Shown here: positions 2,395-51,386 of the stretch, in pieces | Layout of the letters: the number at the start of each line of letters is the position of its first letter | How positions within the stretch are numbered: position 1 is the first letter of the stretch | Sequence record: LR756502.1 | Reading direction: 5' to 3' (one strand) | Length of the DNA: 64,000 nt | Made by a program: the position numbers and the translations under genes | Notes under the pieces: generated by a model | Databases searched by the model: none | The model's input: the letters and a program-made list of their open reading frames with translations, nothing else | Told to the model about the DNA's origin: nothing

Positions 2395-2601
2395 ATGGTA
2401 TTAAAATTCAATTCATTACCAGAAATAGATTGGTTGGTAACATATGGTAAGAGTTACAATATAGTTAAAGTATATAATGGAACATATACTATAATAAATG
2501 ATAATGGTCAGGAGGATGATTATGATGAATCGTTCTTTGATAAGAGGTCGGTACAAGATGAAAGGCATGTGAGGTTAAATAAAATATTAAATGATAATTA
2601 A
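2395..2601 (+). CDS. C-tail small SH3-like protein
   Basis: GKSYNIV...YTIINDNG; ends RHVRLNKILNDN. Confidence 0.7.
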   Translation: MVLKFNSLPEIDWLVTYGKSYNIVKVYNGTYTIINDNGQEDDYDESFFDKRSVQDERHVRLNKILNDN

Positions 2602-3031
2602 GGTTATGGGAAAGCTAGGTATATTTTTAGTATTGATGTTGTTATCGGTACAAGTAATAGGTCAGAGGGAAAGTAAGAAGGAAAGTAAAAAACTATCTAT
2701 AACATGTCATATAACAAGTGATACTGTACAAGAATATTTCTTAGTTAAGATATTATGTGACTATAATTTAGAAGCTGAGTTCAAAGCAGGAGAAAGATGG
2801 AGTTGTGATTTAGCTTTAAATAGAGAATATACGGTTATAGTTTATGTTGATGGATATTCTCCAATGTATGTTGTTATAGATGCTAAGACTAATAGGAGTA
2901 GGGCATATAAATATACTTTTACTATAAATATGGACTCATTGGATGTGAATGAGTATCCAGTACGTTTTGGTGAGATATTTTACAATGAGGATAGTAAGAA
3001 ATTTGATGGTTCATTTATAAAAAATAATTAA
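2591..3031 (+). CDS. Exported protein, carboxypeptidase-regulatory-like beta-sandwich (tentative)
   Basis: Sec-type signal LGIFLVLMLLSVQVIGQ; beta-rich, DLALNREYTVIVYVDGY. Confidence 0.45.
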   Translation: MIIKVMGKLGIFLVLMLLSVQVIGQRESKKESKKLSITCHITSDTVQEYFLVKILCDYNLEAEFKAGERWSCDLALNREYTVIVYVDGYSPMYVVIDAKTNRSRAYKYTFTINMDSLDVNEYPVRFGEIFYNEDSKKFDGSFIKNN

Positions 3032-3032
3032 G

Positions 3033-3386
3033 ATGGAATTAAAGGCAATTGATTTTAGGTTTTTCATTGGATGTTCATGTTATATTATGGATACTGATGA
3101 ACCGGTTCCCTCAACAATTGAGGGAATTGATGGTCATTCTAATACTGTTATTAGTGAGAGGGTATCTTATGTTCCTAGTTTAATAAAGCCGGTTTTAAGG
3201 AGGTTTGATACTTTATCTAGGCATGAGGTTGAGGGATTGAATAAGTTGTGGCCAAAGGAGAATATTAGGCGTACTGTGGTGGGTAGTATACAAATAGATG
3301 CTGAGATAACTGATTATTTGACATCTTTGGGTATAGATGTTTTTGGATGGATTGATAAGGGTTTAGCATTTGATGCTGGGAAGTAG
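3033..3386 (+). CDS. Conserved Bacteroidota-phage-type hypothetical protein
   Basis: IKPVLRR...LGIDVFGWIDKGLAFD pattern. Confidence 0.5.
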   Translation: MELKAIDFRFFIGCSCYIMDTDEPVPSTIEGIDGHSNTVISERVSYVPSLIKPVLRRFDTLSRHEVEGLNKLWPKENIRRTVVGSIQIDAEITDYLTSLGIDVFGWIDKGLAFDAGK

Positions 3387-3390
3387 GTAT

Positions 3391-3420
3391 AAAAAAACGA
3401 ACGGATTTTAGTATAATGAG
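3391..3420 (+). repeat. 29-bp direct repeat, copy 1 (gene-start element)
   Basis: AAAAAACGAACGGATTTTAGTATAATGAG; copy 2 at 3655-3683 differs at one position. Confidence 0.85.
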
Positions 3421-3649
3421 AGTAAATAGAATTAGGAAAATGAAGGATAAAAATATAGTAACATCACATTCAACGACATGTCAATTATGTGGTGAATTAG
3501 TTAGATGGTCTGATAATGATGAGGATTATGGTGACTTATATAGTAAGTTAAAGTATCATTTGAATAATGGGGCATGTGCTCGTAATGAGAAGATAAAGGA
3601 GATATTGGGGATAGAGAATGAACCAAATAGTATGAAGTGGTTTAAATAA
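3416..3649 (+). CDS. C-tail Cys-containing small protein
   Basis: CQLCG; RNEKIKEILGI near the C-terminus. Confidence 0.65.
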   Translation: MRVNRIRKMKDKNIVTSHSTTCQLCGELVRWSDNDEDYGDLYSKLKYHLNNGACARNEKIKEILGIENEPNSMKWFK

Positions 3650-3654
3650 CTACT

Positions 3655-3683
3655 AAAAAACGAACGAATTTTAGTATAATGAG
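3655..3683 (+). repeat. 29-bp direct repeat, copy 2
   Basis: AAAAAACGAACGAATTTTAGTATAATGAG, ending on the ATG of 3679. Confidence 0.85.
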
Positions 3684-3978
3684 TATAATGAGGGAGGAGT
3701 ATATATCATATTATGTTTGTGTAGGGGCCGATCAAGTGGATATGTTATTTTTCGACTCTTATAAAATAAAACGTGGTGATATATTTGAGTATCATGGATA
3801 TGTCACGGATGGTTATCCGGAACCTGTATCATTTCGTGTTCAACATGAAGATTACATTAAGTTAAGGAATAAGGATACTGGTATGGATGACTACTATCTT
3901 TTTAGGAATTTTATATCGGTACAAGATTTAAGGAATAGTAAACTAATAGAATTAGGAATAGAATTAGGAATAGAATGA
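3679..3978 (+). CDS. C-tail small protein
   Basis: Ends RNSKLIELGIELGIE; 12-bp unit ATAGAATTAGGA tandem at 3946-3976. Confidence 0.7.
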   Translation: MSIMREEYISYYVCVGADQVDMLFFDSYKIKRGDIFEYHGYVTDGYPEPVSFRVQHEDYIKLRNKDTGMDDYYLFRNFISVQDLRNSKLIELGIELGIE

Positions 3979-4262
3979 GAATAGAAGAACTTTATAGGAT
4001 AAATCCAGAATTAGATCCAAATTACTTTTCATCTTTGCTGCCGGGTCAAGAGATATCTGAATGTATATCTGCTGTAGTTGATTATTGTATTGAGAATAAA
4101 ACCTCAGCAACTCTTTCATTTAATGGGATTATTAATAGGGTTGAATCTTGGATTGATCCAAAAGAATTAGCTAACGTTTGGTATAGCAGACCAACCGAGA
4201 TATGGTATCAATCACAAAGATCATTAATGAGGAATCATAAAATAAAGGAGTTGGGAATATAA
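3975..4262 (+). CDS. C-tail small protein
   Basis: Ends RNHKIKELGI; ATGA overlap. Confidence 0.7.
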   Translation: MRIEELYRINPELDPNYFSSLLPGQEISECISAVVDYCIENKTSATLSFNGIINRVESWIDPKELANVWYSRPTEIWYQSQRSLMRNHKIKELGI

Positions 4263-4264
4263 AT

Positions 4265-4588
4265 ATGTTATTTGCTAAGAAGAGGTTTAGATCGAAGTGT
4301 ATTAATAATAAGTACATGGACTTTGGTAGTCATACTGGGTTTACGGAGAGGGAGAGTATCTACGGTCATTTAGTTGTTGGTGATTGGTATGATTTTGAGG
4401 TTGATGATAATGGTAGGGCTTGTATTGTATCAAATGATTTAAAATATTATAATGGATATTTCTTTTATAGTAGGGAAGATATAAATTCAAGATATCATTC
4501 GGGAATTGCATCACATATAGATTTCTATCTTTTCTTTGAATCGATAGATGGTATTAGAAATAGTAAATTAGAATCTATAGGGATATGA
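4265..4588 (+). CDS. C-tail SH3-like protein, paralog of 50591-50935
   Basis: CINNKYMDFGSHTGF; ends RNSKLESIGI. Confidence 0.7.
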   Translation: MLFAKKRFRSKCINNKYMDFGSHTGFTERESIYGHLVVGDWYDFEVDDNGRACIVSNDLKYYNGYFFYSREDINSRYHSGIASHIDFYLFFESIDGIRNSKLESIGI

Positions 4589-4791
4589 AAGTATTGTGTG
4601 TAAATATATTGCCATTTACGGTTGGTATTGAGGTAGGGGTTGAGTATGAACTTATGAGAGAATTTTATAGCGGTGATAATCTTATGTATATTATAAAAAT
4701 AAGTGAGGTATCTAGTGGAACATATACGGCTTCTCAGTTCAAGGGGATTGATGAGATAAGGCAAGAGAAATTAGAATCTATGGGGATATGA
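4585..4791 (+). CDS. C-tail SH3-like protein (xVxC family)
   Basis: MKVLCV...GVEYEL; ends RQEKLESMGI. Confidence 0.7.
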   Translation: MKVLCVNILPFTVGIEVGVEYELMREFYSGDNLMYIIKISEVSSGTYTASQFKGIDEIRQEKLESMGI

Positions 4792-5162
4792 GTTTTATTA
4801 TATTTATATACTCATTTCTAATATTGATCTTTGTTATAATGACGATGATTGTTATCAGGAAAACAAACCCTCATATCCTAAGGATGAGGATTAGAAGGAT
4901 AAGCCTGAAGAAGTTTATAAAGATGTATCTTATAATGTTGGTTATATTATTACTTATATCTTATAAGTCAAATAAAATTGAGGAGTATCCAGTATTAAAT
5001 TATGTTGATGCAATTGCACTAACAAGTATTATATCATATATGGTAATACTTAGAGGTGTGACTAATGAGGTTACGGTAGAAGAACGTGATTATATAAATG
5101 ATAATAGAGTATCTTTGGATAGGGACTATAAGATAAACAAGATACTTAAAAATAGAAGATAA
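4788..5162 (+). CDS. C-tail membrane protein (3 TM)
   Basis: Three hydrophobic segments; ends RDYKINKILKNRR. Confidence 0.7.
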   Translation: MSFIIFIYSFLILIFVIMTMIVIRKTNPHILRMRIRRISLKKFIKMYLIMLVILLLISYKSNKIEEYPVLNYVDAIALTSIISYMVILRGVTNEVTVEERDYINDNRVSLDRDYKINKILKNRR

Positions 5163-5163
5163 G

Positions 5164-5466
5164 ATGAAAGACGTAGTAATTAATGAATCTACATTTCCTT
5201 TATCAAATGGTGAATTTGGTAAGATAGCTATATTTATGTATACTGGTGATAGTGATCCAAGACCAATATTGGAGAACGCTATAGCTTACTATGTTGGTGA
5301 TAGTGAAGTTCCATATCATACATTTATAGATTCTCAATTGAATATTCCATGGATGATTACGCTAATAAGTAATATCGGTGATATGGATTACTCTATGTAT
5401 AATGGTGAGACAATGACTCAATTATTTAGGAATGATAGGTTAAATAGAATATTAGGTGAAAAATAA
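5164..5466 (+). CDS. C-tail small protein
   Basis: Ends RNDRLNRILGEK. Confidence 0.7.
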   Translation: MKDVVINESTFPLSNGEFGKIAIFMYTGDSDPRPILENAIAYYVGDSEVPYHTFIDSQLNIPWMITLISNIGDMDYSMYNGETMTQLFRNDRLNRILGEK

Positions 5467-5692
5467 AATGATACAAAAGGTGAAAATTAGAGATTGGATA
5501 GAAAATAAAACATCAGGACGAGTACCACCTCCACCGACCAATCCATCAAAAAGATATCAAGATATGAATGAGGAGATTCTTATCAATGATATGTTAAAAA
5601 GGATTGGTCTTGATAGAGAGGATCTTAAACATATGAAACCAAGTGAATTAAAAGCCAGAATAAGAGATAATAAATTAGATTCAATATTATAA
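5456..5692 (+). CDS. C-tail small protein
   Basis: PPPP stretch; ends RDNKLDSIL. Confidence 0.7.
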   Translation: MKNKMIQKVKIRDWIENKTSGRVPPPPTNPSKRYQDMNEEILINDMLKRIGLDREDLKHMKPSELKARIRDNKLDSIL

Positions 5693-5928
5693 TGTTTAAA
5701 GTTGGTGATAGAGTAAAGAGAAAGAACCATAACTATAGACACACTGAAGGGTGTGAGGTTATAAACTTAAATAACATTTTCTTCACTGACCGCATAATGG
5801 TTAGAGATTATGATATGCCAATGGAGAATAGCGTTGGATGTTTTGTAGAGACTTGGGTAAGGGTAACTGACTTAGTTGATGATTTGGATGGTTATAGAGA
5901 TAGACAATTAAATAAATTAGGAATATGA
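5692..5928 (+). CDS. C-tail KOW/SH3-like protein
   Basis: MFKVGDRV; ends RDRQLNKLGI. Confidence 0.7.
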   Translation: MFKVGDRVKRKNHNYRHTEGCEVINLNNIFFTDRIMVRDYDMPMENSVGCFVETWVRVTDLVDDLDGYRDRQLNKLGI

Positions 5929-6398
5929 TTGATATTGTTAGCTTATATGATTCGAATGATAGATTAACTAAATGGGATAGTGAGTCATATATAATTATAA
6001 CTCGTGGAGTATCAGAAGAAAGGGTATTAGTCAAAAAAAACATGCCATCTATAATGTTACATGAGATCGATGATTATATAAGAACCTGGGGATGTACGAT
6101 GTATGATATTTCATCCTGGGTGGACATGAGCACATATAAATCCTTTAATAATAGTATTTTTTGGTCAGGTCTTTTATTTGTAAGAATAGATATAAATACT
6201 TATCATACTGATATGATAAGCTTGGATTCATCTAATTGGTTTGATTATAAAAAGGAGAGTTTTAGATATAGATTTGATGAGTGGGTAGAAAGGACATCTA
6301 ATGCTTTAATATCAAATGGGAAAGATAATATACCACTTAAAAGGGAAATACATTTAAGATCTTTATTAAAAGATACAAAAAAAATAAACGAATTTTAG
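5925..6398 (+). CDS. C-tail protein
   Basis: REIHLRSLL near the C-terminus. Confidence 0.65.
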   Translation: MIDIVSLYDSNDRLTKWDSESYIIITRGVSEERVLVKKNMPSIMLHEIDDYIRTWGCTMYDISSWVDMSTYKSFNNSIFWSGLLFVRIDINTYHTDMISLDSSNWFDYKKESFRYRFDEWVERTSNALISNGKDNIPLKREIHLRSLLKDTKKINEF

Positions 6399-6406
6399 TA
6401 TATTTG
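6399..6406 (+). promoter_or_regulatory. Bacteroidota-type TAnnTTTG promoter
   Basis: TATATTTG in the intergenic gap before the C-tail gene run 6431-9302. Confidence 0.6.
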
Positions 6407-6430
6407 TATTAAAATGCGTAAGAAGATAAT

Positions 6431-6802
6431 ATGATTAGTGTTAGTATAAATGATTTTATTGGATTAAAGGTTGGTGATAAGTTCAACAATCTATCAATCT
6501 TTACAGACCAACCTTATCCAGGGTTATCAGTATCAGATTGGAATTGGAAACAAATCGAGGATGAAGTCCGACCTGGAACATATCCTATAGACCAGCAGTT
6601 TCTGAAAGCTCCATTTATAGTTCCAATTGGTACATTGTTTGAGGTAGTTTATATTCATAACTTTGTAGATGCTAAACACGTTCATTTTACTTATATAAGT
6701 GATGGTGTAGAATATAGTAGTTGGTTTTCGGTTGGATCACTTAACTCAAGATCATGTTTTATGAACTTCAGAGTTAATAATTTAGAAAAACTAGGAATAT
6801 GA
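6431..6802 (+). CDS. C-tail protein
   Basis: Ends RVNNLEKLGI. Confidence 0.7.
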   Translation: MISVSINDFIGLKVGDKFNNLSIFTDQPYPGLSVSDWNWKQIEDEVRPGTYPIDQQFLKAPFIVPIGTLFEVVYIHNFVDAKHVHFTYISDGVEYSSWFSVGSLNSRSCFMNFRVNNLEKLGI

Positions 6803-7071
6803 AATTAGTTTGTATAAAAGAATTTGGTAAATATGAAGTAGGTAAACACTATGAATACTGGACAAACTTTGGTGGTCTTAATCATATTGTAAAAGACTAT
6901 GATGGTGATACTTATCCATTTGATGGTCGTTGTGCAAGCTACGATCGACCATATGTTTTTGAATACTTTCAAATACTTGATGAATATAGAGATAATCAAT
7001 TAGATAAAATAATGAGAAATCCTGTTTGGGTAGAGGTAGTAAATGATAAAATAAGTAAAATTTTAGAATGA
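6799..7071 (+). CDS. C-tail SH3-like protein (xVxC family)
   Basis: MKLVCIK..VGKHYE; RDNQLDKIM followed by a second tail-like NDKISKILE. Confidence 0.7.
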   Translation: MKLVCIKEFGKYEVGKHYEYWTNFGGLNHIVKDYDGDTYPFDGRCASYDRPYVFEYFQILDEYRDNQLDKIMRNPVWVEVVNDKISKILE

Positions 7072-7319
7072 GAGTAGTTTGTATTAATGACACATATGGT
7101 AATTCCAGACATTTAGAATTATATAAGGTATATGATACTATTGATTCACAAGATGTTTCGAGATACGGATATTATACGGTATACTCAACTACTTATATTA
7201 ATCCCCTTCATAAAATGGGTCTTATTGAAGAGTTAAAGCAAATATGTGTTAATAAGAGGTGTTTTACAACATTAGAGGAATATAGAAGTAATAAAATTAA
7301 TAAACTATTAAATGATTAG
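7068..7319 (+). CDS. C-tail SH3-like protein (xVxC family)
   Basis: MRVVCIND; ends RSNKINKLLND. Confidence 0.7.
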   Translation: MRVVCINDTYGNSRHLELYKVYDTIDSQDVSRYGYYTVYSTTYINPLHKMGLIEELKQICVNKRCFTTLEEYRSNKINKLLND

Positions 7320-7647
7320 AAGAATATTTGATATGATTACAATAGCTTTTAATCCAAACTACTGGCTTATGAACTATAAATATTGTGATGTATGGGACAA
7401 AAAGCTGAATAAGCTTATGAATGAAAATGAATTTGTTATGTATGATATGCGGTATACCTGTGAATTGGGTGATTCTGTCATTTGGGTATCGAATCACCCA
7501 TATGCATCATTCATAGAATATAATACCTTCAATAAAGAAGTAAGAGCATCCAGATTAACAATAATAAAGGCTAATCGTAAATTTAATTATGATATTAAGT
7601 CAATTGAAGATAAGAGAGATATTAGGCTAAATAAGCTAATCAAATAA
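7312..7647 (+). CDS. C-tail protein
   Basis: Ends RDIRLNKLIK. Confidence 0.7.
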   Translation: MIRRIFDMITIAFNPNYWLMNYKYCDVWDKKLNKLMNENEFVMYDMRYTCELGDSVIWVSNHPYASFIEYNTFNKEVRASRLTIIKANRKFNYDIKSIEDKRDIRLNKLIK

Positions 7648-7688
7648 AGCAGATAGTTGTGAATATTAAAATAAACAAATAAATAAAA

Positions 7689-7874
7689 ATGAGTGATATA
7701 AACTTAGATGACCTAAAAAAGAAAAATGTACCGAAGAATGTTCGGCTACAGGTTACTCTATCTAAGGATCTTATAGATCGATTTGATAAGGTTGTTAATG
7801 AACACGGATTTGATAAATCAAAGCTAATGGAAAAGGCTTTGGAGACTTTACTTGATCGCATAGAAAAGAAATAA
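7689..7874 (+). CDS. Ribbon-helix-helix (CopG/Arc-like) DNA-binding protein
   Basis: VRLQVTLSKDLIDRFDKVVNEHGFDKSKLMEKALE: alternating beta-strand plus two helices. Confidence 0.75.
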   Translation: MSDINLDDLKKKNVPKNVRLQVTLSKDLIDRFDKVVNEHGFDKSKLMEKALETLLDRIEKK

Positions 7875-8035
7875 TGAATAAGGAACTAATACCAATACCA
7901 TCAACACTAAGTACTGCTAAAAAAGCAGGATATGATGTTTATATTGATAATAATACAGGTGTTATTACTGTATCATTTACTAGAAAAAAAAGAATACTTA
8001 AAATTAAAAATATACAAAAAGTACTAAATAAATGA
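7874..8035 (+). CDS. Small basic protein (53 aa, not in ORF track)
   Basis: MNKELIP...KVLNK; TAATG and ATGA overlaps at the two ends. Confidence 0.55.
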   Translation: MNKELIPIPSTLSTAKKAGYDVYIDNNTGVITVSFTRKKRILKIKNIQKVLNK

Positions 8036-8223
8036 AGAAGATAATTTTAATAACACCACTAATCATTCTAACGATAGTATTATACTTTTGTAAAGATTGG
8101 ATGCTCTCGGTAGTTCCTGATGGTAACTATTCAGAAAGAGTTATCCATAATAAATATATTTTTATATCTGTTATTGCTATTATAGGATTTGTATTTCTAT
8201 ATTTAACTAGAAGGAAAAAATAG
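8032..8223 (+). CDS. Small 2-TM membrane protein
   Basis: Two hydrophobic helices, basic C-terminus RRKK. Confidence 0.65.
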   Translation: MKKIILITPLIILTIVLYFCKDWMLSVVPDGNYSERVIHNKYIFISVIAIIGFVFLYLTRRKK

Positions 8224-8511
8224 ATGCAAGTAGCTAAGGAAGTAGATAGTAGTAATTTATATAAATTAGGTGATAAAGTTATCGTCCTATTTAATCGACC
8301 AAATATACCAGATATTTATAAGAGTGGTAAGTTTGGTGATGATGAGTTTGTTGTAAATAAAATACATTATGTGTCTGATTCCCCAAAAGGGTTCTATAGG
8401 TATCTAATTAAACATATGAACTCAAATATTTGCTTGTGGAAGTTTGATGAGGAAATTCAATCATTTATATCTATACAAAGGGAAAATAGATTAAAAGAAA
8501 TAGGAATATGA
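8224..8511 (+). CDS. C-tail KOW/SH3-like protein
   Basis: YKLGDKV; ends RENRLKEIGI. Confidence 0.7.
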   Translation: MQVAKEVDSSNLYKLGDKVIVLFNRPNIPDIYKSGKFGDDEFVVNKIHYVSDSPKGFYRYLIKHMNSNICLWKFDEEIQSFISIQRENRLKEIGI

Positions 8512-8789
8512 AAGATAGTATAAATATATTATTTTTGGGTAAAAATACTGTTGTAGTGGAATCAAGTAGTGGTCCAGTATTTAGGTATATGTATATGAGA
8601 ACTATAAAAGGACATCCAGAGTATTCATCTGCTACCCAAACTACATTCTCAAATGATTTAGAATACTTAAAGAAGTTATCACTTAATGAAGCTAATATGA
8701 CATTTGGTGATACTGATCCAATAACAGATGTAGAAGCTTTACATAAAAAATCACTTGAAGAATATTTTGTATCAGTAAAAAGAATATAA
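8508..8789 (+). CDS. Hypothetical protein
   Basis: 93 aa; ATGA overlap. Confidence 0.65.
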   Translation: MKDSINILFLGKNTVVVESSSGPVFRYMYMRTIKGHPEYSSATQTTFSNDLEYLKKLSLNEANMTFGDTDPITDVEALHKKSLEEYFVSVKRI

Positions 8790-8799
8790 TAATATAAAG

Positions 8800-9012
8800 A
8801 TGAGAGTAACAATTGAATTAGAGAAAGAAGACTTCGATGCAATGCATGATGTTATACTTGAAGTATGTGGTGAATCACCAAGTAAAGAAGAAATACAAAG
8901 CTTCTGGGATTTAATGCCTGATGATGTTAAAGGCACCGCAATACAATGGGGTTGTAATGATACAGTATTCAGAGATAATATGTATGAGTGGTTACAGAAG
9001 TTTGAAAAATAG
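8800..9012 (+). CDS. Small acidic hypothetical protein
   Basis: 70 aa, D/E rich. Confidence 0.65.
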   Translation: MRVTIELEKEDFDAMHDVILEVCGESPSKEEIQSFWDLMPDDVKGTAIQWGCNDTVFRDNMYEWLQKFEK

Positions 9013-9038
9013 TACGAAATGAAATTATTTATGAAAGA

Positions 9039-9302
9039 ATGAGTAATATGTTTATGTCTGATAAATATGATAAGTTTATACGTGAGTATAATAGTCAACA
9101 CACATCATGTCCTAAATGTGGTAGTGTTGAACATTCAACTACATTAATGGGATATATTCCCGATCTTAATAATCTAAAAGATTTTAAAGATAGAAATCTA
9201 TGTACTTGTATTAAATGTGGGGATAAACATTATACTCATGATAGAGTAAGTAAGGCTGATATAAGAGATGGTAAGATAGATAGATTGCTTGATGAAATTT
9301 AA
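9039..9302 (+). CDS. C-tail zinc-ribbon protein
   Basis: CPKCG...CIKCG; ends RDGKIDRLLDEI. Confidence 0.7.
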   Translation: MSNMFMSDKYDKFIREYNSQHTSCPKCGSVEHSTTLMGYIPDLNNLKDFKDRNLCTCIKCGDKHYTHDRVSKADIRDGKIDRLLDEI

Positions 9303-9313
9303 TAACTCAGGAT

Positions 9314-9613
9314 ATGAAACATTATACTAAATGCTTTTACTCGAATTGTTTTATAACATCACTGTATTTAATATTTACTGGTAGAGGTAATACCCTTTTG
9401 ATTTTAAAGAAAAAGAAAGGAATGTTTGAAGAGGGTAGAATACATTGGGCTGTATTAGATAAGAACGGGAACTATTGGAATTTCAGAAGAATAGGCAATA
9501 CTAAAAATAAAATATGTATTAACGGTAGAATAGAAGCTACATTCTTAAATAATAAACGCATAATGGACATTCACGAAAAGAGTATAATCTATAGACTTAA
9601 ACTAACTAAATAA
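9314..9613 (+). CDS. Hypothetical basic protein
   Basis: 99 aa ORF. Confidence 0.6.
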   Translation: MKHYTKCFYSNCFITSLYLIFTGRGNTLLILKKKKGMFEEGRIHWAVLDKNGNYWNFRRIGNTKNKICINGRIEATFLNNKRIMDIHEKSIIYRLKLTK

Positions 9614-9617
9614 AATT

Positions 9618-9881
9618 ATGTATATAGAAAGATTTTTCAACCCACAAGTACAAAATACAAATGAATGTGTTTTTTATAATACAAAAGAAGCATTAGAACA
9701 TTGTGAAAAACATTACACATTCATAAGACATTACTCTTTTAGAGGAGACCAATATATTAAATATGATGGTAAAAATCTAATTTGGAATGATGGTAGTATA
9801 GTTGATAAAGGAAAATTACCTAAAAGTGGTAATGGATGGGGTAAGTATTTTAATGAGATACACAACAGGTGCTCATTTTAG
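9618..9881 (+). CDS. Hypothetical protein
   Basis: 87 aa ORF. Confidence 0.6.
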   Translation: MYIERFFNPQVQNTNECVFYNTKEALEHCEKHYTFIRHYSFRGDQYIKYDGKNLIWNDGSIVDKGKLPKSGNGWGKYFNEIHNRCSF

Positions 9882-10065
9882 TTATATAATTACAGAATAT
9901 GAATAAGAAGATACAGGAACTACACGAGATAGACCGACCAATAGAACTAAAGATGAAACAAATGAGTATTATCTATAGCAAGATAATATCAAAGGGAAAG
10001 TTCATACCCAATCTAAACTGGTCAATCACAAGCCCATTAGAACCAATAGGATTAAAAAGGAGATA

Positions 10066-10173
10066 ATGAAAAATATATTACAATTTTGGGAAGATAGTGC
10101 AATAAGATTACCTTTAGTATTAGGTATGTTAACATTAATAGTAATAATTATTGGTGTGATATTATTGGTGTAA
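10066..10173 (+). CDS. Small membrane peptide (35 aa, not in ORF track)
   Basis: MKNILQFWED...LGMLTLIVIIIGVILLV; TAATG coupling to a 55-aa ORF at 9899-10066. Confidence 0.5.
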   Translation: MKNILQFWEDSAIRLPLVLGMLTLIVIIIGVILLV

Positions 10174-10194
10174 TAGGGTTGTGTATAGTTCATA

Positions 10195-10332
10195 TCACTC
10201 ATCAGCATATTCAAGAAACCCATCAATGACAGAATCAAATTCTTCAGCATACATGTTAAAGTCATCATCAGATAATAAATATCCCCACTCTTTTAACATC
10301 TGTAAATTTTCAAATTTCTTTAAGTGTTTCAT
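10195..10332 (-). CDS. N-tagged acidic microprotein (45 aa, not in ORF track)
   Basis: MKHLKKFE-NLQMLKEWGYLLSDDDFNMYAEEFDSVIDGFLEYADE; TAATG overlap with the upstream gene. Confidence 0.75.
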   Translation of the reverse strand: MKHLKKFENLQMLKEWGYLLSDDDFNMYAEEFDSVIDGFLEYADE

Positions 10333-10865
10333 TAAGATTTTATTATTATATCTATATAGTCAAATCCTTCTCTATTATAAACTATTTTATCGGATTGTAA
10401 CCCATACTTTTTTGGATCAAATTCATGAACTCCTGGTATTATCTTACTCATCTTTACTAATAACTCATCTGGCGTTAGTATTGATCTTTCACTCACATAA
10501 CTATTGTGACCACTCATCCCATGTGGTACATAGACAGATCTAATGGATTGTATATAACCACTATCTAGTAAATATTTTACCTTTGATTCTATTATTAAAT
10601 AGATTTGTTTATATTGATCCATTGTTATACAATCAAGGTTTTTCTTTGAAGGTATTGGTTCGAATCTAACCCAAACACCTCTTTCTTTTTCCGAACTATG
10701 AATACTATATGGTACTTTAAATTCACCATATTGTACAATATCGCTTATAGTTACTGGAACAGGAAAGTCATCAATATCAAATGCTTCTTTACTAATAGTA
10801 AGTAGATCTTTTGAACTTAGTCTACGATAGAATTCAGATTCATTATACTTTTTTAAGTGTTTCAT
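10332..10865 (-). CDS. N-tagged protein (putative virion internal protein)
   Basis: Starts MKHLKKYNES. Confidence 0.65.
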   Translation of the reverse strand: MKHLKKYNESEFYRRLSSKDLLTISKEAFDIDDFPVPVTISDIVQYGEFKVPYSIHSSEKERGVWVRFEPIPSKKNLDCITMDQYKQIYLIIESKVKYLLDSGYIQSIRSVYVPHGMSGHNSYVSERSILTPDELLVKMSKIIPGVHEFDPKKYGLQSDKIVYNREGFDYIDIIIKS

Positions 10866-10875
10866 TTTTGAAATT

Positions 10876-10917
10876 TTATTCTATATACTCAATTTTATTT
10901 TTCTTTAAGTGTTTCAT
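10876..10917 (-). CDS. Tag-only micro-ORF or remnant (13 aa)
   Basis: MKHLKKNKIEYIE*, directly behind TAATATATA (10922-10930). Confidence 0.55.
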   Translation of the reverse strand: MKHLKKNKIEYIE

Positions 10918-10921
10918 AAAG

Positions 10922-10930
10922 TATATATTA
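10922..10930 (-). promoter_or_regulatory. TAATATATA putative phage late promoter
   Basis: Recurrent 9-mer a few nt upstream of N-tagged starts. Confidence 0.6.
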
Positions 10931-10949
10931 TTTATCAAGTGTGTTTTTA

Positions 10950-11060
10950 TATAAGCAGGTTGGAGTATACTTGCTTCCCAAGTTAGGGTAGATGCTGAAA
11001 TCCTCACGGTCGCAATAGAGGATTGATATGTTCTGATTATTAAAGGGTTTCGGTATAACT
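10950..11060. other. GC-enriched intergenic segment with stem-loops (candidate structured RNA)
   Basis: AAGCAGG/CTTGCTT, CCC/GGG and AATCCTC/GAGGATT hairpins in an otherwise AT-rich gap. Confidence 0.3.
11028..11044 (+). repeat. 17-bp direct repeat left of the HNH gene
   Basis: ATGTTCTGATTATTAAA, identical at 11705-11721. Confidence 0.9.
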
Positions 11061-11121
11061 TAAATACCTTAAAACAAAGATACGGATAATATTTGAATCT
11101 ACCAAATAAATATATAATACA

Positions 11122-11700: not shown

Positions 11701-11704
11701 CCTG

Positions 11705-11721
11705 ATGTTCTGATTATTAAA
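11705..11721 (+). repeat. 17-bp direct repeat right of the HNH gene
   Basis: ATGTTCTGATTATTAAA. Confidence 0.9.
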
Positions 11722-11738
11722 TATAAATATATAACCTA

Positions 11739-12515: not shown

Positions 12516-12532
12516 CTTAATATATACTTTTC

Positions 12533-13042: not shown

Positions 13043-13050
13043 ATATAGAG

Positions 13051-39813: not shown

Positions 39814-39838
39814 TTTGTGGAATAGATTTTGGTTTCCA

Positions 39839-39846: not shown

Positions 39847-39908
39847 AGGATTTTTGTAGAAATCACCAAATAAATATATTCCACAAAATCTAATATATAG
39901 ATATAGAA

Positions 39909-44126: not shown

Positions 44127-44954
44127 ATGAAATACATAAATAGTTATAAATTATTTGAAGAATCAGCTATCAAAACGGATAAATCGTTTGATTCTGTTGT
44201 TAAAGATGTATTAGCTGATCTTATAGATGAATATGTTTTTGTTGAGACTGCTCCTGGTCCATCACATAGACCAGATGTATATTATGTACTGATTAGATCA
44301 TCTGCCAATAAAATTACCATCGGACCAAAAGGTGATTTGATGGATATATCATCAAGCTTAACACAGTTGGTTTCATTTTTAGATAGTGATTATCTTTTAA
44401 CCGGATTGGATGTTGTTTGGATGGACACATCAAATAGTAAGCATAAGTTTAGTGAGATTATTTCCGATGTCATCACATACCCCTCTTCTACAGGTCAACC
44501 GAAAATAAAAAATGGAGAGAAGTTCTTCTCAAATTGTATTAAGCTGTTTTACCAAAATCACTATTTTGAGAACAATAAATTTAAATCGGTATCTGATGTA
44601 AGATTGGAATTTAGAAGAAGTAATGAGTCGGTACTTAATTATAAATTATCTAAGAGTGAATTTCATTTACTACATTCCGATTCTGAAAAAACAGTTGTAC
44701 TTGATAAATTTCTAAATGATACTAGCCGTTTTTATTACATTCTGTTTAAGAATAGTAAAATAGGTGCATTAAAATTGGTGTATGATTTGAATTCAAGAAG
44801 TAAACAGAATTTCAGAGTGTATGATAACTACAACGCCGAGATAGATTTTAATAAATTAGATATCTACTTGATGCAAAATGATATGAGATATGGTACATTT
44901 AATGATGCCTGGTATTATATCGAGGATGATTTTAATAATCAAGGATATCACTAA
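44127..44954 (+). CDS. N-tagged two-module family protein
   Basis: MKYINSYKLFEE; VKDVLADLIDE; internal RSNES; TAATATATA at 44113-44121. Confidence 0.7.
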   Translation: MKYINSYKLFEESAIKTDKSFDSVVKDVLADLIDEYVFVETAPGPSHRPDVYYVLIRSSANKITIGPKGDLMDISSSLTQLVSFLDSDYLLTGLDVVWMDTSNSKHKFSEIISDVITYPSSTGQPKIKNGEKFFSNCIKLFYQNHYFENNKFKSVSDVRLEFRRSNESVLNYKLSKSEFHLLHSDSEKTVVLDKFLNDTSRFYYILFKNSKIGALKLVYDLNSRSKQNFRVYDNYNAEIDFNKLDIYLMQNDMRYGTFNDAWYYIEDDFNNQGYH

Positions 44955-45363
44955 TTTTATTCTCTCTTATTCTTCTGTTGATTGTTAATACTACATCTTG
45001 TATATCTGTAGCATAGTCAAATAACTTAACACTACAACCATCGACCTCCAATATCTTAACACCACTAAAATCAGATGTTACATGATTTATTATATTTATA
45101 ATAATTGGTTCAGTTGTTGGTAATTTATCTGCAGATCTACCAATTGGTTTGAATAACTCATTCTCAATGCAAACTGAATTATTAACATCATTGATGTCAA
45201 TAAGTGATAGTATGTCACCATTAATAGTATCAAAAAGTATATAACAATGTTCGACTGGGATATTATAATATGTTGCAGCGGATGATCCAGATTGATATTT
45301 TTGAATTGCGATATATTTTATTTCCTTATTCAATTGCTGATAATGAGTACTCATCATCTTCAT
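44932..45363 (-). CDS. C-tail protein
   Basis: Ends RENKISDILDY. Confidence 0.7.
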   Translation of the reverse strand: MKMMSTHYQQLNKEIKYIAIQKYQSGSSAATYYNIPVEHCYILFDTINGDILSLIDINDVNNSVCIENELFKPIGRSADKLPTTEPIIINIINHVTSDFSGVKILEVDGCSVKLFDYATDIQDVVLTINRRIRENKISDILDY

Positions 45364-46019: not shown

Positions 46020-46424
46020 ATGATGTTAAAATTAAACATATCTGGATATAAATGTGGTGACTTTATTGTTGGTAATACGTATGACTTTACACATAATATC
46101 GGATCTTTGGTCAAGCTTAGTTATGTTGGTGATTCTAAAATAGATAAATGGCCAATATTTCAATACAAGAGAGATTTAAATAATTTAAATACTCACAAAG
46201 TAATTGAGTATAAGGACATGTGTGGTCGTGAATTGCTAGATGTTTGTGTTATTACTCCACTAGAGAATCAGAATTCTAGTAGATTCCTAAATAATAAGGA
46301 TAAAATAAATGACATATTATTAAAAAATGCAATGAATCAATTTGGGTTTAATCTAGATGATATAGATGATGATGATAAGGTTAAATCAATATTGAGGCAA
46401 ATTATTCTATCCGATATATTATGA
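46020..46424 (+). CDS. C-tail protein
   Basis: Ends RQIILSDIL. Confidence 0.65.
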   Translation: MMLKLNISGYKCGDFIVGNTYDFTHNIGSLVKLSYVGDSKIDKWPIFQYKRDLNNLNTHKVIEYKDMCGRELLDVCVITPLENQNSSRFLNNKDKINDILLKNAMNQFGFNLDDIDDDDKVKSILRQIILSDIL

Positions 46425-46648
46425 AAAGTGGTATAATAAAAATAGGCGATATTGTTAAATTTACAGATACATTTATTAGTGAGTGGATGTCTCTTGGGTT
46501 AATATCTGAGGAAGATGAGAGTTGGTGGCATGATCAACATATAGTAACTGAGGTTGGATATGAAGATAATGAAGAATATGTAATACTTGACAATGATGAA
46601 AATACATATACCAGTACAAGTGATGATAACTTTATCATTATTAATTAA
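46421..46648 (+). CDS. Acidic KOW/SH3-like protein
   Basis: IKIGDIVKF. Confidence 0.6.
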   Translation: MKSGIIKIGDIVKFTDTFISEWMSLGLISEEDESWWHDQHIVTEVGYEDNEEYVILDNDENTYTSTSDDNFIIIN

Positions 46649-47105
46649 TTACATCATCTATCTTACTATCTCTTTCGCTTTGGATATCGATATATCCACT
46701 CCAATTCTTTATTAGCTTCTTAGTTTCATCTTTTCTGGTCTTATCCCTGTATATTACATCATATTTAGTTTTTATCCAAGACTTCATTGAATCTACGTTG
46801 GTAAACCAGTGTTCATCTAAATTATCAACATATATTATTTTATCTTGATAAAGGAATACTTTTACATTCGATGATCCTTTCCTAATAACAATATAGAATC
46901 TACCATAATCGGTCTTTACTCTTTTTATACAACCGATATACATGAACATTTTTATAAAGGATATCTCACCATCAATAGATAATATGACGTCCGCTACTAC
47001 TAGTATAGGAATAAGTAAATACATGAAGAAAAATAAGGGGTTATGTATACCAAGCCAAGTGGCGATTAGTATATAACTGGTAATTATGATCATTGGTCTT
47101 GGCAT
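46641..47105 (-). CDS. C-tail membrane protein
   Basis: N-terminal TM pair; ends RDSKIDDVIN. Confidence 0.7.
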   Translation of the reverse strand: MPRPMIIITSYILIATWLGIHNPLFFFMYLLIPILVVADVILSIDGEISFIKMFMYIGCIKRVKTDYGRFYIVIRKGSSNVKVFLYQDKIIYVDNLDEHWFTNVDSMKSWIKTKYDVIYRDKTRKDETKKLIKNWSGYIDIQSERDSKIDDVIN

Positions 47106-47109: not shown

Positions 47110-47502
47110 TTAATTTAATAGATTTGATATAATTTTTTCCCTATACTCTGATTTGTTAATTTCAACCTTTTTAATATTATCACTTAACCACTCAGAGAAG
47201 ATGTTCAAGTCTGTTTTGGTGATCCGTTGTATGCGATAAAATTGTGACATATTCATAGAAGACCACTCACGGCATAGTTTTATTCTGGAGCTGTGTTCCA
47301 CAGAATCCCACCAATCCTTATTCTTACCAAGAGTACTTATAACTGAGTATACCTTATTTGTGAATTTTATAAGTTGTCTATTCTCTTGTCTTCTTGATTT
47401 TCTACTGAAAGAAGAGTCAGAGTACATATTTTTGTTGGAATCATCCAACTTTAATTGGTGATTTGTTTTTGCCCTTAGTGTATGTTTATCTTTATAAATC
47501 AT
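47110..47502 (-). CDS. C-tail protein
   Basis: Ends REKIISNLLN. Confidence 0.7.
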   Translation of the reverse strand: MIYKDKHTLRAKTNHQLKLDDSNKNMYSDSSFSRKSRRQENRQLIKFTNKVYSVISTLGKNKDWWDSVEHSSRIKLCREWSSMNMSQFYRIQRITKTDLNIFSEWLSDNIKKVEINKSEYREKIISNLLN

Positions 47503-49521: not shown

Positions 49522-49540
49522 AGCGCTTTATATATTATCA

Positions 49541-49548
49541 CAAATATA
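49541..49548 (-). promoter_or_regulatory. Bacteroidota-type TAnnTTTG promoter
   Basis: TATATTTG on the minus strand, about 20 nt upstream of 49521. Confidence 0.55.
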
Positions 49549-49603
49549 TGGATAATAATTTATATTCAAGTATATAGTTATGTTTATAATTTATATATAA
49601 TAT

Positions 49604-49858
49604 ATGAAACATATAAGATCATATAAAATATTTGATTCAATTACTAGTAAAAAATTACTTGAATATGATACAACCAAAGGATCTTTATATGCTTATGATA
49701 AGAGAGCGATTACAGTTGGGTCCGAAGTAATTGAGCCATTAAAAGAGTTTCTTTATAATTGTAAGGATTGTGGTATTGAGTTTTACTCTATTAGAAATGA
49801 TGATGTTGTTTGTAAAAGGTGTGAATCTGATAATGTATGTCCAGTAATATATGAATAG
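49604..49858 (+). CDS. N-tagged zinc-ribbon protein
   Basis: MKHIRSYKIFDS; CKDCG...CKRCES. Confidence 0.65.
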   Translation: MKHIRSYKIFDSITSKKLLEYDTTKGSLYAYDKRAITVGSEVIEPLKEFLYNCKDCGIEFYSIRNDDVVCKRCESDNVCPVIYE

Positions 49859-49941
49859 TATGAATGTAATTTTTCAACAATTAAACAATTTAGGAGATTT
49901 GTATATAAGTAATATATAAAACAAAATATAATAACGAAATT

Positions 49942-50214
49942 ATGAAAAAATCAACACTTTTATTATTAACACTGATGGTTATAATGTTATCATCATTTAA
50001 ACTAAGAGATAATTATCCTTGTCATCCAAACGGTGATTTGGGTCCTTGTACTCATCCTATGCACCCGAGAGGTGACTTAGGGGCATGTACTCATATATTT
50101 TATGATGCTTGGGGAAATTTATGTTACCAACATGTTGGTGGTGATGTTTATCCTTGTACACATCCATTACATTATATTGGTGATGTTTATCCTTGTGTTC
50201 ACTTCTGTTACTAA
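49942..50214 (+). CDS. Exported Cys/His-repeat peptide
   Basis: Signal peptide followed by repeated (G-D-x-x-P)-C-x-H-x-x-H units. Confidence 0.7.
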   Translation: MKKSTLLLLTLMVIMLSSFKLRDNYPCHPNGDLGPCTHPMHPRGDLGACTHIFYDAWGNLCYQHVGGDVYPCTHPLHYIGDVYPCVHFCY

Positions 50215-50234
50215 TTATAGAGTTAGAATAAAAT

Positions 50235-50269
50235 AAAAAAATCTGGGCCAATTGGTTCAGATTTTTTTT
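50235..50269. terminator. Bidirectional intrinsic terminator
   Basis: AAAAAAATCTGGGCC-AATT-GGTTCAGATTTTTTTT between convergent genes. Confidence 0.8.
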
Positions 50270-50594
50270 ATACTCCTATTTCATTTAGTCTAATCTGTCT
50301 TACATCTCCAATTGCGTGATTTATATAAAGTTTGAACGTGGCTTTGTGGTATTCTGTTGACCACTGACTTCTATTGCCATTAATTGAGTAGTGGTCATCA
50401 ACTATATTATAAATATCAATGAAGTCACTGAAGTTGCTTAAAAGAAATAGAAGTTTCTGGTAGGATCGGCTGTCATAATATGTATAGTCCTTAAATGGAT
50501 ATTTATGCCCATGAGCATTTGATATATCGCAACATATACCAATTATCTCCGACATGACCTTTACCCTAACCCACTCTTTAGCCTCTTTTTTCAT
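50268..50594 (-). CDS. C-tail protein
   Basis: Ends RQIRLNEIGV. Confidence 0.7.
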   Translation of the reverse strand: MKKEAKEWVRVKVMSEIIGICCDISNAHGHKYPFKDYTYYDSRSYQKLLFLLSNFSDFIDIYNIVDDHYSINGNRSQWSTEYHKATFKLYINHAIGDVRQIRLNEIGV

Positions 50595-50935
50595 TTATCC
50601 AGTATATTATCTATATTTATATCTCTCATCTCTTCAACGGTGTAGAAGAAAATGGAGAATCTATTATGTTCTCCACCATATTTATCATTTCTATAAAACT
50701 CCGGACCGTCGGGTGATGATAGTTCTCTATATTCACAAGGATCTCCTTTGAAGTTCAATATTTTATAGTATTTTACTCCAGCGACAGCATTAATGTTTTG
50801 CGAGCAGTCATCATCAAACTCATACCATTCATCAACATTTAGATTTATATAATATTTCTCATGCCATTGAAACCCAGTATGGCTACCAAAATCATTATAT
50901 TTATTATTCTTACATATGGTTTTAAATCTACCCAT
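50591..50935 (-). CDS. C-tail SH3-like protein, paralog of 4265-4588
   Basis: CKNNKYNDFGSHTGF; ends RDINIDNILDK. Confidence 0.7.
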   Translation of the reverse strand: MGRFKTICKNNKYNDFGSHTGFQWHEKYYINLNVDEWYEFDDDCSQNINAVAGVKYYKILNFKGDPCEYRELSSPDGPEFYRNDKYGGEHNRFSIFFYTVEEMRDINIDNILDK

Positions 50936-51386
50936 TACAAAGTAGTTTACTTATTTTCATATCTCTATCTAATTTAACCTCATCAATTGTATCATATAAT
51001 GATCCATTGAATATAAAAATATCTCCATCAACAAAACTTAATGATACCTTATATCTATTTAAAAAATACTTACCACTCTTCCACTCAACAATATATCTAT
51101 CAATTAGATATTGCCCAATGTGATTAAGTATATTTTTTATTAACAAGTCATCAAGTAATTTAAATTCAATCATAATCATATGTGTTGTTGTGTCTTGGAT
51201 ATCACACCATTCATGACAAAGCTTGTGTATTATTCTCGTCGGTGCACTCTCCAAGTATCCAAATTTATCAGTCCTTCTTGGCTTGCTTCGTTTAGAAAAG
51301 CTCCTGTATTGGTCGGTTACACGGATATACCTGTCATATACATGTGACCTTTCCACATTTATTCCTTCATAAAAGCTAAATATCAT
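50928..51386 (-). CDS. C-tail protein
   Basis: Ends RDMKISKLLCNG. Confidence 0.7.
   Translation of the reverse strand: MIFSFYEGINVERSHVYDRYIRVTDQYRSFSKRSKPRRTDKFGYLESAPTRIIHKLCHEWCDIQDTTTHMIMIEFKLLDDLLIKNILNHIGQYLIDRYIVEWKSGKYFLNRYKVSLSFVDGDIFIFNGSLYDTIDEVKLDRDMKISKLLCNG

Follow-up and report, generated by a model that had tools for sequence, protein, structure and literature searches.

A C-terminal tail on about one protein in seven of a 642-kb phage genome as a candidate docking helix

Why do dozens of small proteins encoded in one stretch of phage DNA share one short C-terminal pattern when their bodies are otherwise unrelated? The stretch comprises bases 1-64000 of LR756502.1 (the window, 64,000 nucleotides in all; 29.9% guanine plus cytosine (GC), N runs absent), and its positions 2000-22000 are 100% identical to the same coordinates of that record. 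According to the papers on these genomes, LR756502.1 is circular, measures 642,428 bp and ranks among the four largest curated circular phage genomes; it stems from a French freshwater lake and represents an uncultured phage of the Mahaphage clade with a predicted host in the Bacteroidetes, its nearest relatives being LR745206 and, more distantly, Mar_Mega_1. The original prediction, made from the letters of the window, had pointed to a C-terminal helix shared by 39 open reading frames (ORFs) and had proposed that it recruits many proteins to one hub. We find that this tail, with the consensus R-[D/N/E]-x-K-[L/I]-x-x-[L/I]-[G/L]-I, is carried by ~15% of the LR756502.1 proteome, that is, by about one protein in seven. 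That it serves as a portable helix for docking or addressing, recognised by one putative clade-specific cytoplasmic receptor, is in our judgement an evenly balanced proposition.

Occurrence and form of the tail

In a greedy, non-overlapping set of 137 window ORFs (93% coverage), the strict pattern R..[KRQN][LI]..[LIVM] was found within the last 16 residues of 33 proteins, against 0.59 ± 0.79 expected from 500 per-protein shuffles (maximum 4). Control windows of 16 residues in the same ORFs gave two matches at the N-terminus, two at -32 to -16 and none at -48 to -32, and 34 of the 46 strict-pattern occurrences anywhere in the window proteins end 10 or fewer residues from the stop. A looser pattern, applied to all window ORFs of at least 40 amino acids (aa), yields 39 matches, two or three of them doubtful, and a position matrix built from the tails (threshold of at least 12 bits genome-wide) contributes four degenerate tails, at 17187-17618, 27527-28000, 46020-46424 and 47110-47502. 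The original count of 39 is thus reproduced within the definition used. Its scale, however, was underestimated: the tags are real, but they belong to a system that is both genome-wide and clade-wide. When the remainder of LR756502.1 was read as twelve separate, unjoined pieces of 40-50 kb, the genome as a whole gave tails on 148 of ~993 ORFs, against 4.0 ± 2.0 in shuffles. They occur in most 20-kb bins and are densest at 0-20 kb (22 of 56 ORFs) and 620-642 kb (35 of 63), two regions that adjoin on the circular genome. With the matrix, 189 sites of at least 12 bits were found genome-wide, against six in the shuffled proteome; 154 of them lie at most eight residues from the C-terminus, 17 at 9-30 residues and 18 deeper inside.

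Position 0 of the tail is Arg in 100% of cases. It is followed at +1 by Asp (47%), Asn (19%) or Glu (18%), at +3 by Lys (78%) or Arg (9%), at +4 by Leu (62%) or Ile (38%), at +7 by Ile (55%) or Leu (36%), at +8 by Leu (52%), Gly (28%) or Phe (3%) and at +9 by Ile (27%), while Glu stands at +6 in 22% of the tails. Exactly two residues follow +7 in 76 of the 148 tails (range 1-8); 66 of the 148 end in a hydrophobic residue and 71 in a charged or polar one. Carriers are small, with a median of 110 aa against 145. The motif is also found away from the end, as the original prediction had reported for 37449-38024 (residue 55) and 60212-60799 (residue 132), both of which we confirm. Altogether 35 copies are followed by at least nine residues, and these are always of the I-L or L-L form and never of the G-I form; a further window example is 6799-7071, and others lie at genome positions 119170-119535, 366984-367580 and 256301-257968. 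Such copies may have arisen when a tail-bearing gene fused with the gene downstream of it.

The window ORFs that carry the motif are given below with strand, length, position of the tail (Arg codon to stop) and matrix score; three lengths run from the first ATG, with the originally proposed start in brackets.

2395-2601 (+), 68 aa; tail 2563-2601, ...RHVRLNKILNDN; strict pattern and matrix, 18.9
3679-3978 (+), 99 aa; tail 3931-3978, ...RNSKLIELGIELGIE; 20.6
3975-4262 (+), 95 aa; tail 4230-4262, ...RNHKIKELGI; 21.7
4265-4588 (+), 107 aa, body paralogous to 50591-50935 (BLAST 7e-12); tail 4556-4588, ...RNSKLESIGI; 18.7
4585-4791 (+), 68 aa, MKVLCV start; tail 4759-4791, ...RQEKLESMGI; 15.9
4788-5162 (+), 124 aa, membrane protein with a transmembrane segment; tail 5121-5162, ...RDYKINKILKNRR; 24.3
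5164-5466 (+), 100 aa; tail 5428-5466, ...RNDRLNRILGEK; 21.1
5468-5692 (+), 74 aa from the first ATG (originally 5456); tail 5663-5692, ...RDNKLDSIL; 26.2
5692-5928 (+), 78 aa; tail 5896-5928, ...RDRQLNKLGI; 19.5
6431-6802 (+), 123 aa, weak tail 6770-6802, ...RVNNLEKLGI; matches the strict pattern, 10.2
6799-7071 (+), 90 aa, MKLVCI start, motif then short extension; YRDNQLDKIM at 6988-7017, 19 residues (from +7) before the end; 19.9
7068-7319 (+), 83 aa, MRVVCI start; tail 7284-7319, ...RSNKINKLLND; 20.9
7312-7647 (+), 111 aa; tail 7615-7647, ...RDIRLNKLIK; 19.4
8224-8511 (+), 95 aa; tail 8479-8511, ...RENRLKEIGI; 21.9
9039-9302 (+), 87 aa, four-Cys zinc-ribbon-like body (Zn_Ribbon_TF 3.3e-4, below cut-off); tail 9264-9302, ...RDGKIDRLLDEI; 22.7
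16226-16414 (+), 62 aa from the first ATG (originally 16217); tail 16370-16414, ...RNKQLESIGVFETL; 19.8
16416-16634 (+), 72 aa from the first ATG (originally 16392), tail-less homologue 121Q gp172; tail 16602-16634, ...RDDKLKDLGI; 23.5
16853-17182 (+), 109 aa, GTP_EFTU_D2 match below cut-off; tail 17150-17182, ...RNDKLNELLK; 24.3
17187-17618 (+), 143 aa, degenerate tail 17574-17618, ...RDSIIDTILDGNGI; 14.5, outside the strict pattern
17602-17823 (+), 73 aa; tail 17791-17823, ...REIKLEVLGI; 19.2
17820-18098 (+), 92 aa; tail 18051-18098, ...REYRLNKLLTNNYNQ; 21.4
18103-18513 (+), 136 aa; tail 18481-18513, ...RNNKLESIGI; 21.1
18896-19465 (+), 189 aa; tail 19433-19465, ...RDSNLDEILN; 18.6
20299-20520 (+), 73 aa, predicted SH3-like barrel with terminal helix; tail 20488-20520, ...RNNKLKEIGI; 23.6
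27238-27522 (-), 94 aa, MRLVCI start; tail 27238-27273, ...RERKLNKLFKI; 18.2
27527-28000 (-), 157 aa, homologue with canonical tail at genome 629211-629669; degenerate tail 27527-27559, ...RNNTINTLLS; 12.0
32777-33034 (-), 85 aa; tail 32777-32806, ...REDKLNELL
33031-33369 (-), 112 aa; tail 33031-33069, ...REKKLSLILEKY; 19.6
37449-38024 (-), 191 aa, internal copy ERDTQLKSILG at 37833-37862 with ~125 residues after it; 18.1
38954-39598 (-), 214 aa, riboflavin kinase (residues 2-128), Cys-rich extension and tail 38954-38986, ...RNIKIRKIIE
39595-39927 (-), 110 aa; tail 39595-39627, ...RDFKIKELGI; 20.7
44932-45363 (-), 143 aa; tail 44932-44967, ...RENKISDILDY; 18.0
46020-46424 (+), 134 aa, degenerate tail 46395-46424, ...RQIILSDIL; 13.2
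46641-47105 (-), 154 aa, membrane protein with a transmembrane segment; tail 46641-46673, ...RDSKIDDVIN; 15.8
47110-47502 (-), 130 aa, degenerate tail 47110-47142, ...REKIISNLLN; 13.5
50268-50594 (-), 108 aa; tail 50268-50300, ...RQIRLNEIGV; 18.6
50591-50935 (-), 114 aa, body paralogous to 4265-4588; tail 50591-50626, ...RDINIDNILDK; 20.0
50928-51386 (-), 152 aa; tail 50928-50966, ...RDMKISKLLCNG; 18.6
60212-60799 (-), 195 aa, internal copy YRDDKINKVLE at 60377-60406, then a Lys-rich extension; 22.8

In ORF 3679-3978 (+) the tail (3931-3978) ends K-L-I-E-L-G-I-E-L-G-I-E, with the E-L-G-I unit tandemly duplicated.

Protein-level selection, bodies and helix

Selection on the tail acts at the protein level, as had been proposed. 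The invariant Arg is encoded by AGA (104), AGG (28), CGT (9), CGA (4) and CGC (3), in proportions that match three background sets (p = 0.10-0.43); Leu and Ile, as well as Lys and Arg, are swapped by first- and second-position changes, and the tail is kept in homologues down to 30% identity. Codons ending in A are in excess at +3, +4, +7, +8 and +9. However, in non-tail genes the A-ending fraction of the last 12 codons is 0.79 with a co-directional gene at most 20 nt away and 0.68 without one, against 0.64-0.67 in gene bodies. Since non-tail genes with a close downstream gene show the same bias, the excess is a gene-end effect and not a signal of the tail, and the codon analysis does not bear out the conservation at nucleotide level that had been named as the finding that could overturn the proposal. 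More generally, gene ends near a downstream gene are enriched in A-ending codons with or without a tail (0.79-0.83 versus 0.68-0.72), which looks like selection for an A-rich initiation region.

The G-[I/L/V]-stop endings, 36 genome-wide, deserve separate mention, as 21 of them form ATGA start/stop overlaps of the GGA ATA TGA type, compared with 77 of 851 non-tail genes (9%); examples in the window are 4585-4588, 4788-4791, 5925-5928, 6799-6802, 8508-8511 and 17820-17823. Orthologues exchange G-I-stop for I-L-N-G or I-L-N-D-K-R, and the ATGA junction is therefore a preference and not the cause of the tail. An overlap with the next co-directional gene is seen for 71 of the 148 tail genes and for 190 of 844 others; 44 of the 148 lack any co-directional neighbour within 20 nt, and for 16 the adjacent gene is convergent.

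The bodies are indeed largely unrelated, as originally claimed. With the tails removed, an all-versus-all BLAST of 36 window carriers returned a single significant pair, 4265-4588 and 50591-50935 (7e-12), and genome-wide 149 tails fall into 142 body families (single-linkage, E < 1e-3); common descent of the carrier bodies was rejected on these grounds. Bodies that could be identified across the genome include a riboflavin kinase (PF01687), a BtpA-like protein, an SH3-like barrel and nine proteins with transmembrane segments, and the largest example is a protein of 622 aa. Several of the folds originally proposed for window proteins held up: the riboflavin kinase at 38954-39598 (PF01687, 1.8e-22), the SH3-like body of 20299-20520, which is backed by an AlphaFold model (predicted local distance difference test (pLDDT) 83) and by Foldseek matches to SH3 folds (TM-score about 0.56), and membrane proteins, with transmembrane segments in 4788-5162 and 46641-47105. 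The proposed zinc ribbon (9039-9302; 20.6 bits versus a cut-off of 29) and EF-Tu domain II (16853-17182; 16 bits versus 30.3) have Pfam matches below threshold. The carriers that start with M-K-[V/L]-V-C-I probably form one divergent small-barrel family.

Once present on a body, the tail is retained. All 11 orthologues of 20299-20520 (59-78% identity) keep its R, K, L and I, and among 22 homologues of the riboflavin-kinase fusion, down to 30% identity, Arg is kept in 22 and the strict pattern in 16. Among pairs of homologous bodies drawn from the genome and 46 other loci, both members bear a tail in 143 and neither does in 316; the discordant pairs number 20, nearly all of them involving degenerate tails that the strict pattern missed. 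Outside the clade the same bodies exist without it, which supports the tail as a modular add-on: matches to bifunctional cellular RibF terminate without a tail, and the body of ORF 16416-16634 is matched by homologous proteins from Rak2-type enterobacterial jumbo phages (PHROG 26571), among which gp172 of Escherichia coli phage 121Q (66 aa; coding sequence 5980-6180 within 121Q 86338-98484) stops where the tail would start. None of the 28 neighbouring 121Q coding sequences translated from the gp172 stretch bears a tail. The gp172 homology also ties an accessory gene of this megaphage to cultured Rak2-type jumbo phages. In the riboflavin-kinase fusion, a conserved Cys-rich module of ~70 residues precedes the tail, with invariant C131, C134, C156 and C175 and the stretch D-H-G-Y-S-N-Y-T-V-E-G, and the architecture of kinase, Cys-rich module and tail is common to the 22 metagenomic homologues. 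Directly downstream of this fusion on the same strand lies a D12-class N6-adenine DNA methyltransferase (38031-38924 (-); PF02086, 6.4e-26).

A terminal helix, as originally proposed, is predicted by AlphaFold on two unrelated bodies: at residues 60-70 of 73 in the product of 20299-20520, directly after the last strand, and as a 17-residue helix at residues 197-213 of 214 in the riboflavin-kinase fusion (model pLDDT 86, helix about 90). The helix is, on the other hand, not amphipathic to any measurable degree, as the helical hydrophobic moment of the tail is 0.23, while random 13-mers taken from the carriers give 0.26 ± 0.14. The moment does not exceed random because, at 100 degrees per residue, Arg(0) and Lys(+3) lie on the same face as Leu/Ile(+4, +7), and an amphipathic membrane-targeting or microcompartment-type helix was rejected for both reasons. 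In a glycine helix C-cap, hydrophobic residues stand three places before the helix end and directly after the Gly. The ending L(+4)...L(+7)-G(+8)-I(+9) looks like such a cap, and the I-L-polar ending would then continue the helix by one turn. In the membrane-anchored carriers the transmembrane segments are N-terminal and are followed by Lys/Arg, which by the positive-inside rule would place the tail in the cytoplasm.

Dialects, a putative receptor and rival readings

The tail is restricted to one clade. A back-translated R-D-x-K-L-x-x-[L/I]-G-I-stop pattern recovered 44 stretches from IMG/VR, many on contigs of 150-483 kb and all with 24-35% GC, in which 239 of 743 ORFs bear tails, while 596 Gb of bacterial and archaeal genomes yielded a single match to this pattern, no more than chance would give. 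The smaller IMG/VR contigs are fragments of the same clade, with UvsX 74-76% identical to that of LR756502 and LR745206. Scanning related huge phages, a check suggested along with the original prediction, revealed tails in LR745206 (14 on 78 ORFs in 50 kb, against 0.29 expected) and in the 636-kb LR756504 (UvsX 56% identical; 27 on 147 ORFs in the 50 kb sampled, LR756504.1 1-50000, against 0.65 expected). Tails were at chance level in the samples of LR756501 (two of 50 kb), LR756500, Lak-C1, Lak-A1 and E. coli phage 121Q (50 kb each), which are equally AT-rich (24-31% GC), except 121Q (36% GC).

The tails of LR756504 are charge-inverted and read R-K-x-[K/R]-I-x-[N/S]-L-N. When one representative per family is counted, acidic or amide versus basic residues at +1 number 119:2 in LR756502 and 1:12 in LR756504 (Fisher 3e-14), Leu versus Ile at +4 88:54 and 2:14, and Leu or Gly versus Asn at +8 114:0 and 2:5. 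Unrelated proteins of one genome thus share genome-specific tail features, which is what co-evolution with one receptor predicts, and the original suggestion of a single common partner has become more likely. Several small paralogue groups in the LR756504 sample (M-I-P-F-K-P-G-D..., M-S-Y-L-K-F-A-D...) bear the inverted tail.

How might such a tail work? Under the docking proposal, an autonomous C-terminal α-helix of ~12-17 residues would serve as a docking or address peptide, and a single receptor specific to this megaphage subclade would capture, in the host cytoplasm, every protein that carries it, so that ~150 otherwise unrelated accessory proteins could be gathered at one machine, scaffold or compartment. 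The receptor would read the mixed face formed by Arg(0), Lys(+3), Leu/Ile(+4) and Leu/Ile(+7/+8), and its co-evolution with the tails might explain why the charge at +1 is inverted in LR756504, with K/R in place of D/N/E. Of the possible destinations, we favour a phage-encoded assembly or compartment over proteolysis or virion packaging. Several points weigh against the docking proposal. The 35 non-terminal matrix matches imply that a free C-terminus is unnecessary; the high helix pLDDT in monomer models may reflect packing of the helix on its own body; and the dialects could equally have arisen if a tail-coding cassette expanded independently in each lineage, as no orthologous tail-bearing pair was found between LR756502 and the 50-kb LR756504 sample that could separate these two histories. 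Moreover, the receptor is putative, and the phage is uncultured, the tail being known from sequence and predicted structure.

A separate N-terminal tag, M-K-[H/Y]-[L/I]-K-x-[Y/F]-K-[I/L]-F-E, bears on these readings. It is found on 29 ORFs of the window (for example 11739-12515 (+), 13051-13518 (+), 20622-21692 (-), 24005-25108 (-), 29355-29933 (+), 34154-35059 (+) and 61390-62259 (+)) and on 61 of the genome (median 163 aa). It occurs in LR745206 and in contig SRR14932583_59409 and is near-absent from the LR756501, LR756500, Lak and 121Q samples. The claim that no ORF carries both tags nearly holds, as two of the 61 N-tagged proteins genome-wide match the tail, though weakly. The capsid-targeting sequence (CTS) of phage T4 is an N-terminal peptide of ~10 residues that addresses diverse, even foreign, proteins to the head and is cut after L/I-X-E by the prohead protease (PMC9026906). 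The N-tag resembles it in having conserved residues 4 and 7, and its [I/L]-F-E at 9-11 parallels the L/I-X-E site (PMC9026906). In contig SRR14932583_59409, from a relative of the phage, a homologue of ribosomal protein L7/L12 (3269-3646 (-); PF00542) lies among tail- and N-tag-bearing genes.

Other readings of the tail were weighed against a docking helix. One holds that it has no common partner and is a generic structural cap or self-association helix for small domains. This fits the high-confidence helix directly after the last strand of the body, the hydrophobic residues at -4, -1, +4 and +7/+8 that could pack on a barrel, and the very small size of many carriers; yet packing on 142 different bodies needs neither the invariant Arg nor the near-invariant Lys of the Leu/Ile face, the dialects change in concert within a genome, the tail is also found on enzymes, membrane proteins and the 622-aa protein, and the tail-less 121Q homologue suggests that the body folds without it, so that we consider this reading unlikely. 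Another would make the tail a turnover tag, a degron or adaptor-binding peptide that hands carriers to a protease, such as the phage ClpP with a host unfoldase, for timed clearance. A terminal, cytoplasmic and body-independent tail would suit such a role, and the window encodes a genuine ClpP (58607-59281 (-); PF00574, 260 bits), with orthologues in the tail-bearing LR745206 and LR756504. The ClpP degron of the original prediction is nevertheless weakened by the varied last residues, by the variable spacing and the 35 of 189 sites that are non-terminal, by the well-formed helix predicted in place of a disordered end, and by Lak phages, which have a close ClpP (58-65% identity) and no tails in the sampled regions; we regard it as quite unlikely. 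The ClpP itself is full-length, lies in a non-structural neighbourhood and has orthologues in LR745206 (55%), LR756504 (59%) and the Lak phages; no unfoldase gene was seen adjacent to it, in an analysis that included no dedicated unfoldase search. Also hard to favour, and in our estimate distinctly improbable, is a virion cargo signal, by which the tail would bind scaffold or coat in the procapsid interior and the carriers would be packaged and delivered with the DNA. Such a signal would resemble the C-terminus of a scaffolding protein, the cargo-loading peptide of encapsulins or a T4 CTS moved to the C-terminal end. A portable terminal tag on many diverse small accessory proteins would be expected of it, phages do address heterologous proteins to the head by a 10-residue peptide (PMC9026906), and a 642-kb genome implies a very large capsid. 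But the N-tag, almost never combined with the tail, resembles the T4 CTS far more, the carriers include nine membrane proteins, integral or anchored, as well as metabolic enzymes, and the Glu at +6 that would make an L/I-x-E site is present in 22% of the tails.

Two further readings were considered. The last residues might act in the ribosome exit tunnel to favour re-initiation at an overlapping ATG, in keeping with the excess of overlaps among tail genes, the share of ATGA junctions among G-[I/L/V]-stop endings and the exactly two residues that follow +7 in about half of the tails. Such a nascent-chain signal is, however, hard to reconcile with the 44 tail genes without a close co-directional gene and the 16 that face a convergent one, with a distance to the stop of 1-8 residues, with the internal copies that are kept and with orthologues that exchange G-I-stop for I-L-N-D-K-R-stop, and tight packing is typical of small-gene arrays anyway; we think it very improbable. 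Least credible of all, and barely worth entertaining, is a translated DNA or RNA element such as a promoter, a ribosome-loading site or a recombination cassette. The excess of A-ending codons and the recurrent GGA ATA TGA junction would speak for it, but the Arg comes from two unrelated codon families at background frequencies, Leu/Ile and Lys/Arg replace each other through changes at the first and second codon positions, A-ending codons are just as much in excess in non-tail genes closely followed by another gene, the variable positions of the tail are free, and the dialects differ by amino-acid class and not by a shared nucleotide word.

Taken together with the N-tag, the docking tail might form part of a two-address sorting code on about one-fifth of the proteome of this megaphage subclade, an idea that we offer tentatively and consider rather unlikely. 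The N-tag would direct proteins to the capsid and be cleaved after I-F-E, while the C-terminal tail would direct others to a second, phage-made cytoplasmic destination by way of a dedicated co-evolving receptor; if true, a bacterial virus would possess a protein-targeting system of proteome scale. Whatever its reader, a legible tag on ~15% of unannotatable small megaphage genes, with a second tag on ~6%, sorts them into functional classes and can be used as a sequence marker for the clade in metagenomes. One putative receptor, once named, would explain many genes together, and the charge-inverted LR756504 dialect predicts a compensating change in it. If this receptor exists, the carriers would be, to our knowledge, the largest protein set sharing one docking peptide in any phage.

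Known families and nearest known systems

No family covering the tail was found by Pfam, PHROGs and NCBIfam searches of the tail-bearing proteins or by Pfam on 79 isolated tails, and a profile of these 79 tails against all Protein Data Bank sequences had no match below E = 1. When 17 window tails were made into a profile and run against 1.84 billion representative proteins, five significant matches resulted, all of them repeat proteins in which weak matches are summed; as a short motif cannot reach significance on single copies, this search is uninformative on the spread of the tag. A description of the C-terminal tail was not found in the literature, including the papers on these genomes, and the term 'C-terminal' is absent from the Nature 2020 paper. 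Two of the five matches are proteins with repeats of the helicase-associated (HA) domain (PF03457), the last helix of which reads R-x-x-K-L-x-x-I-G-hydrophobic like the tail, as in the third helices ...S-K-I-R-A-E-K-L-D-S-I-G-F... and ...K-E-R-Q-H-K-L-E-S-I-G-V.... The Pfam HA model, however, had no match among 28 tail-bearing ORFs and 79 isolated tails, and with an ad hoc HA profile only model positions 49-64 matched the tails, HA helices 1 and 2 being matched by no LR756502 protein. Homology to this three-helix domain of ~64 residues was therefore rejected, and the resemblance is most likely convergence on the same helix-capping pattern.

Among known peptide motifs, the sliding-clamp-binding or PIP-type motif has a leading Gln and a pair of aromatic or bulky residues at its end. 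It was rejected for the tail, in which position 0 is always Arg and never Gln, and Phe reaches 3% at +8 and is unlisted at +7. Closer in logic are the cargo-loading peptides of encapsulins and the encapsulation peptides of microcompartments, short terminal peptides on unrelated cargo enzymes that are read by one shell protein. The tail is likewise a terminal peptide or helix on unrelated proteins, but microcompartment peptides are amphipathic, whereas its hydrophobic moment is not above random, and its share of the proteome is far larger in scale. The poxvirus ankyrin C-terminal F-box-like (PRANC) module and the C-terminal signals of type IV secretion plug many different proteins into one hub; they are analogies only, as these modules are longer or compositional and come from systems unrelated to the tail. 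To ssrA-type ClpX degrons the tail can be likened in being terminal, body-independent and cytoplasmic, with ClpP encoded nearby. It differs from them in its variable spacing, internal copies and predicted folded helix, and the conserved non-polar extreme C-terminus of such degrons is not seen in it.

The nearest precedent within phages is the CTS of T4, which, like the tail, is independent of the body and occurs on unrelated proteins encoded by a single phage (PMC9026906). The T4 peptide lies at the N-terminus and is cleaved, whereas the tail is C-terminal, helical and present on membrane proteins and enzymes. An N-terminal location does not apply, with 154 of the 189 matrix sites within eight residues of the C-terminus and 2 of 137 ORFs matching in the N-terminal window, nor does an L/I-X-E protease site, as the +4 Leu/Ile is followed by Glu at +6 in only 22%. 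In being short, position-specific, body-independent, conserved at the protein level and gained or lost as a module, the tail has the properties of a short linear docking motif.

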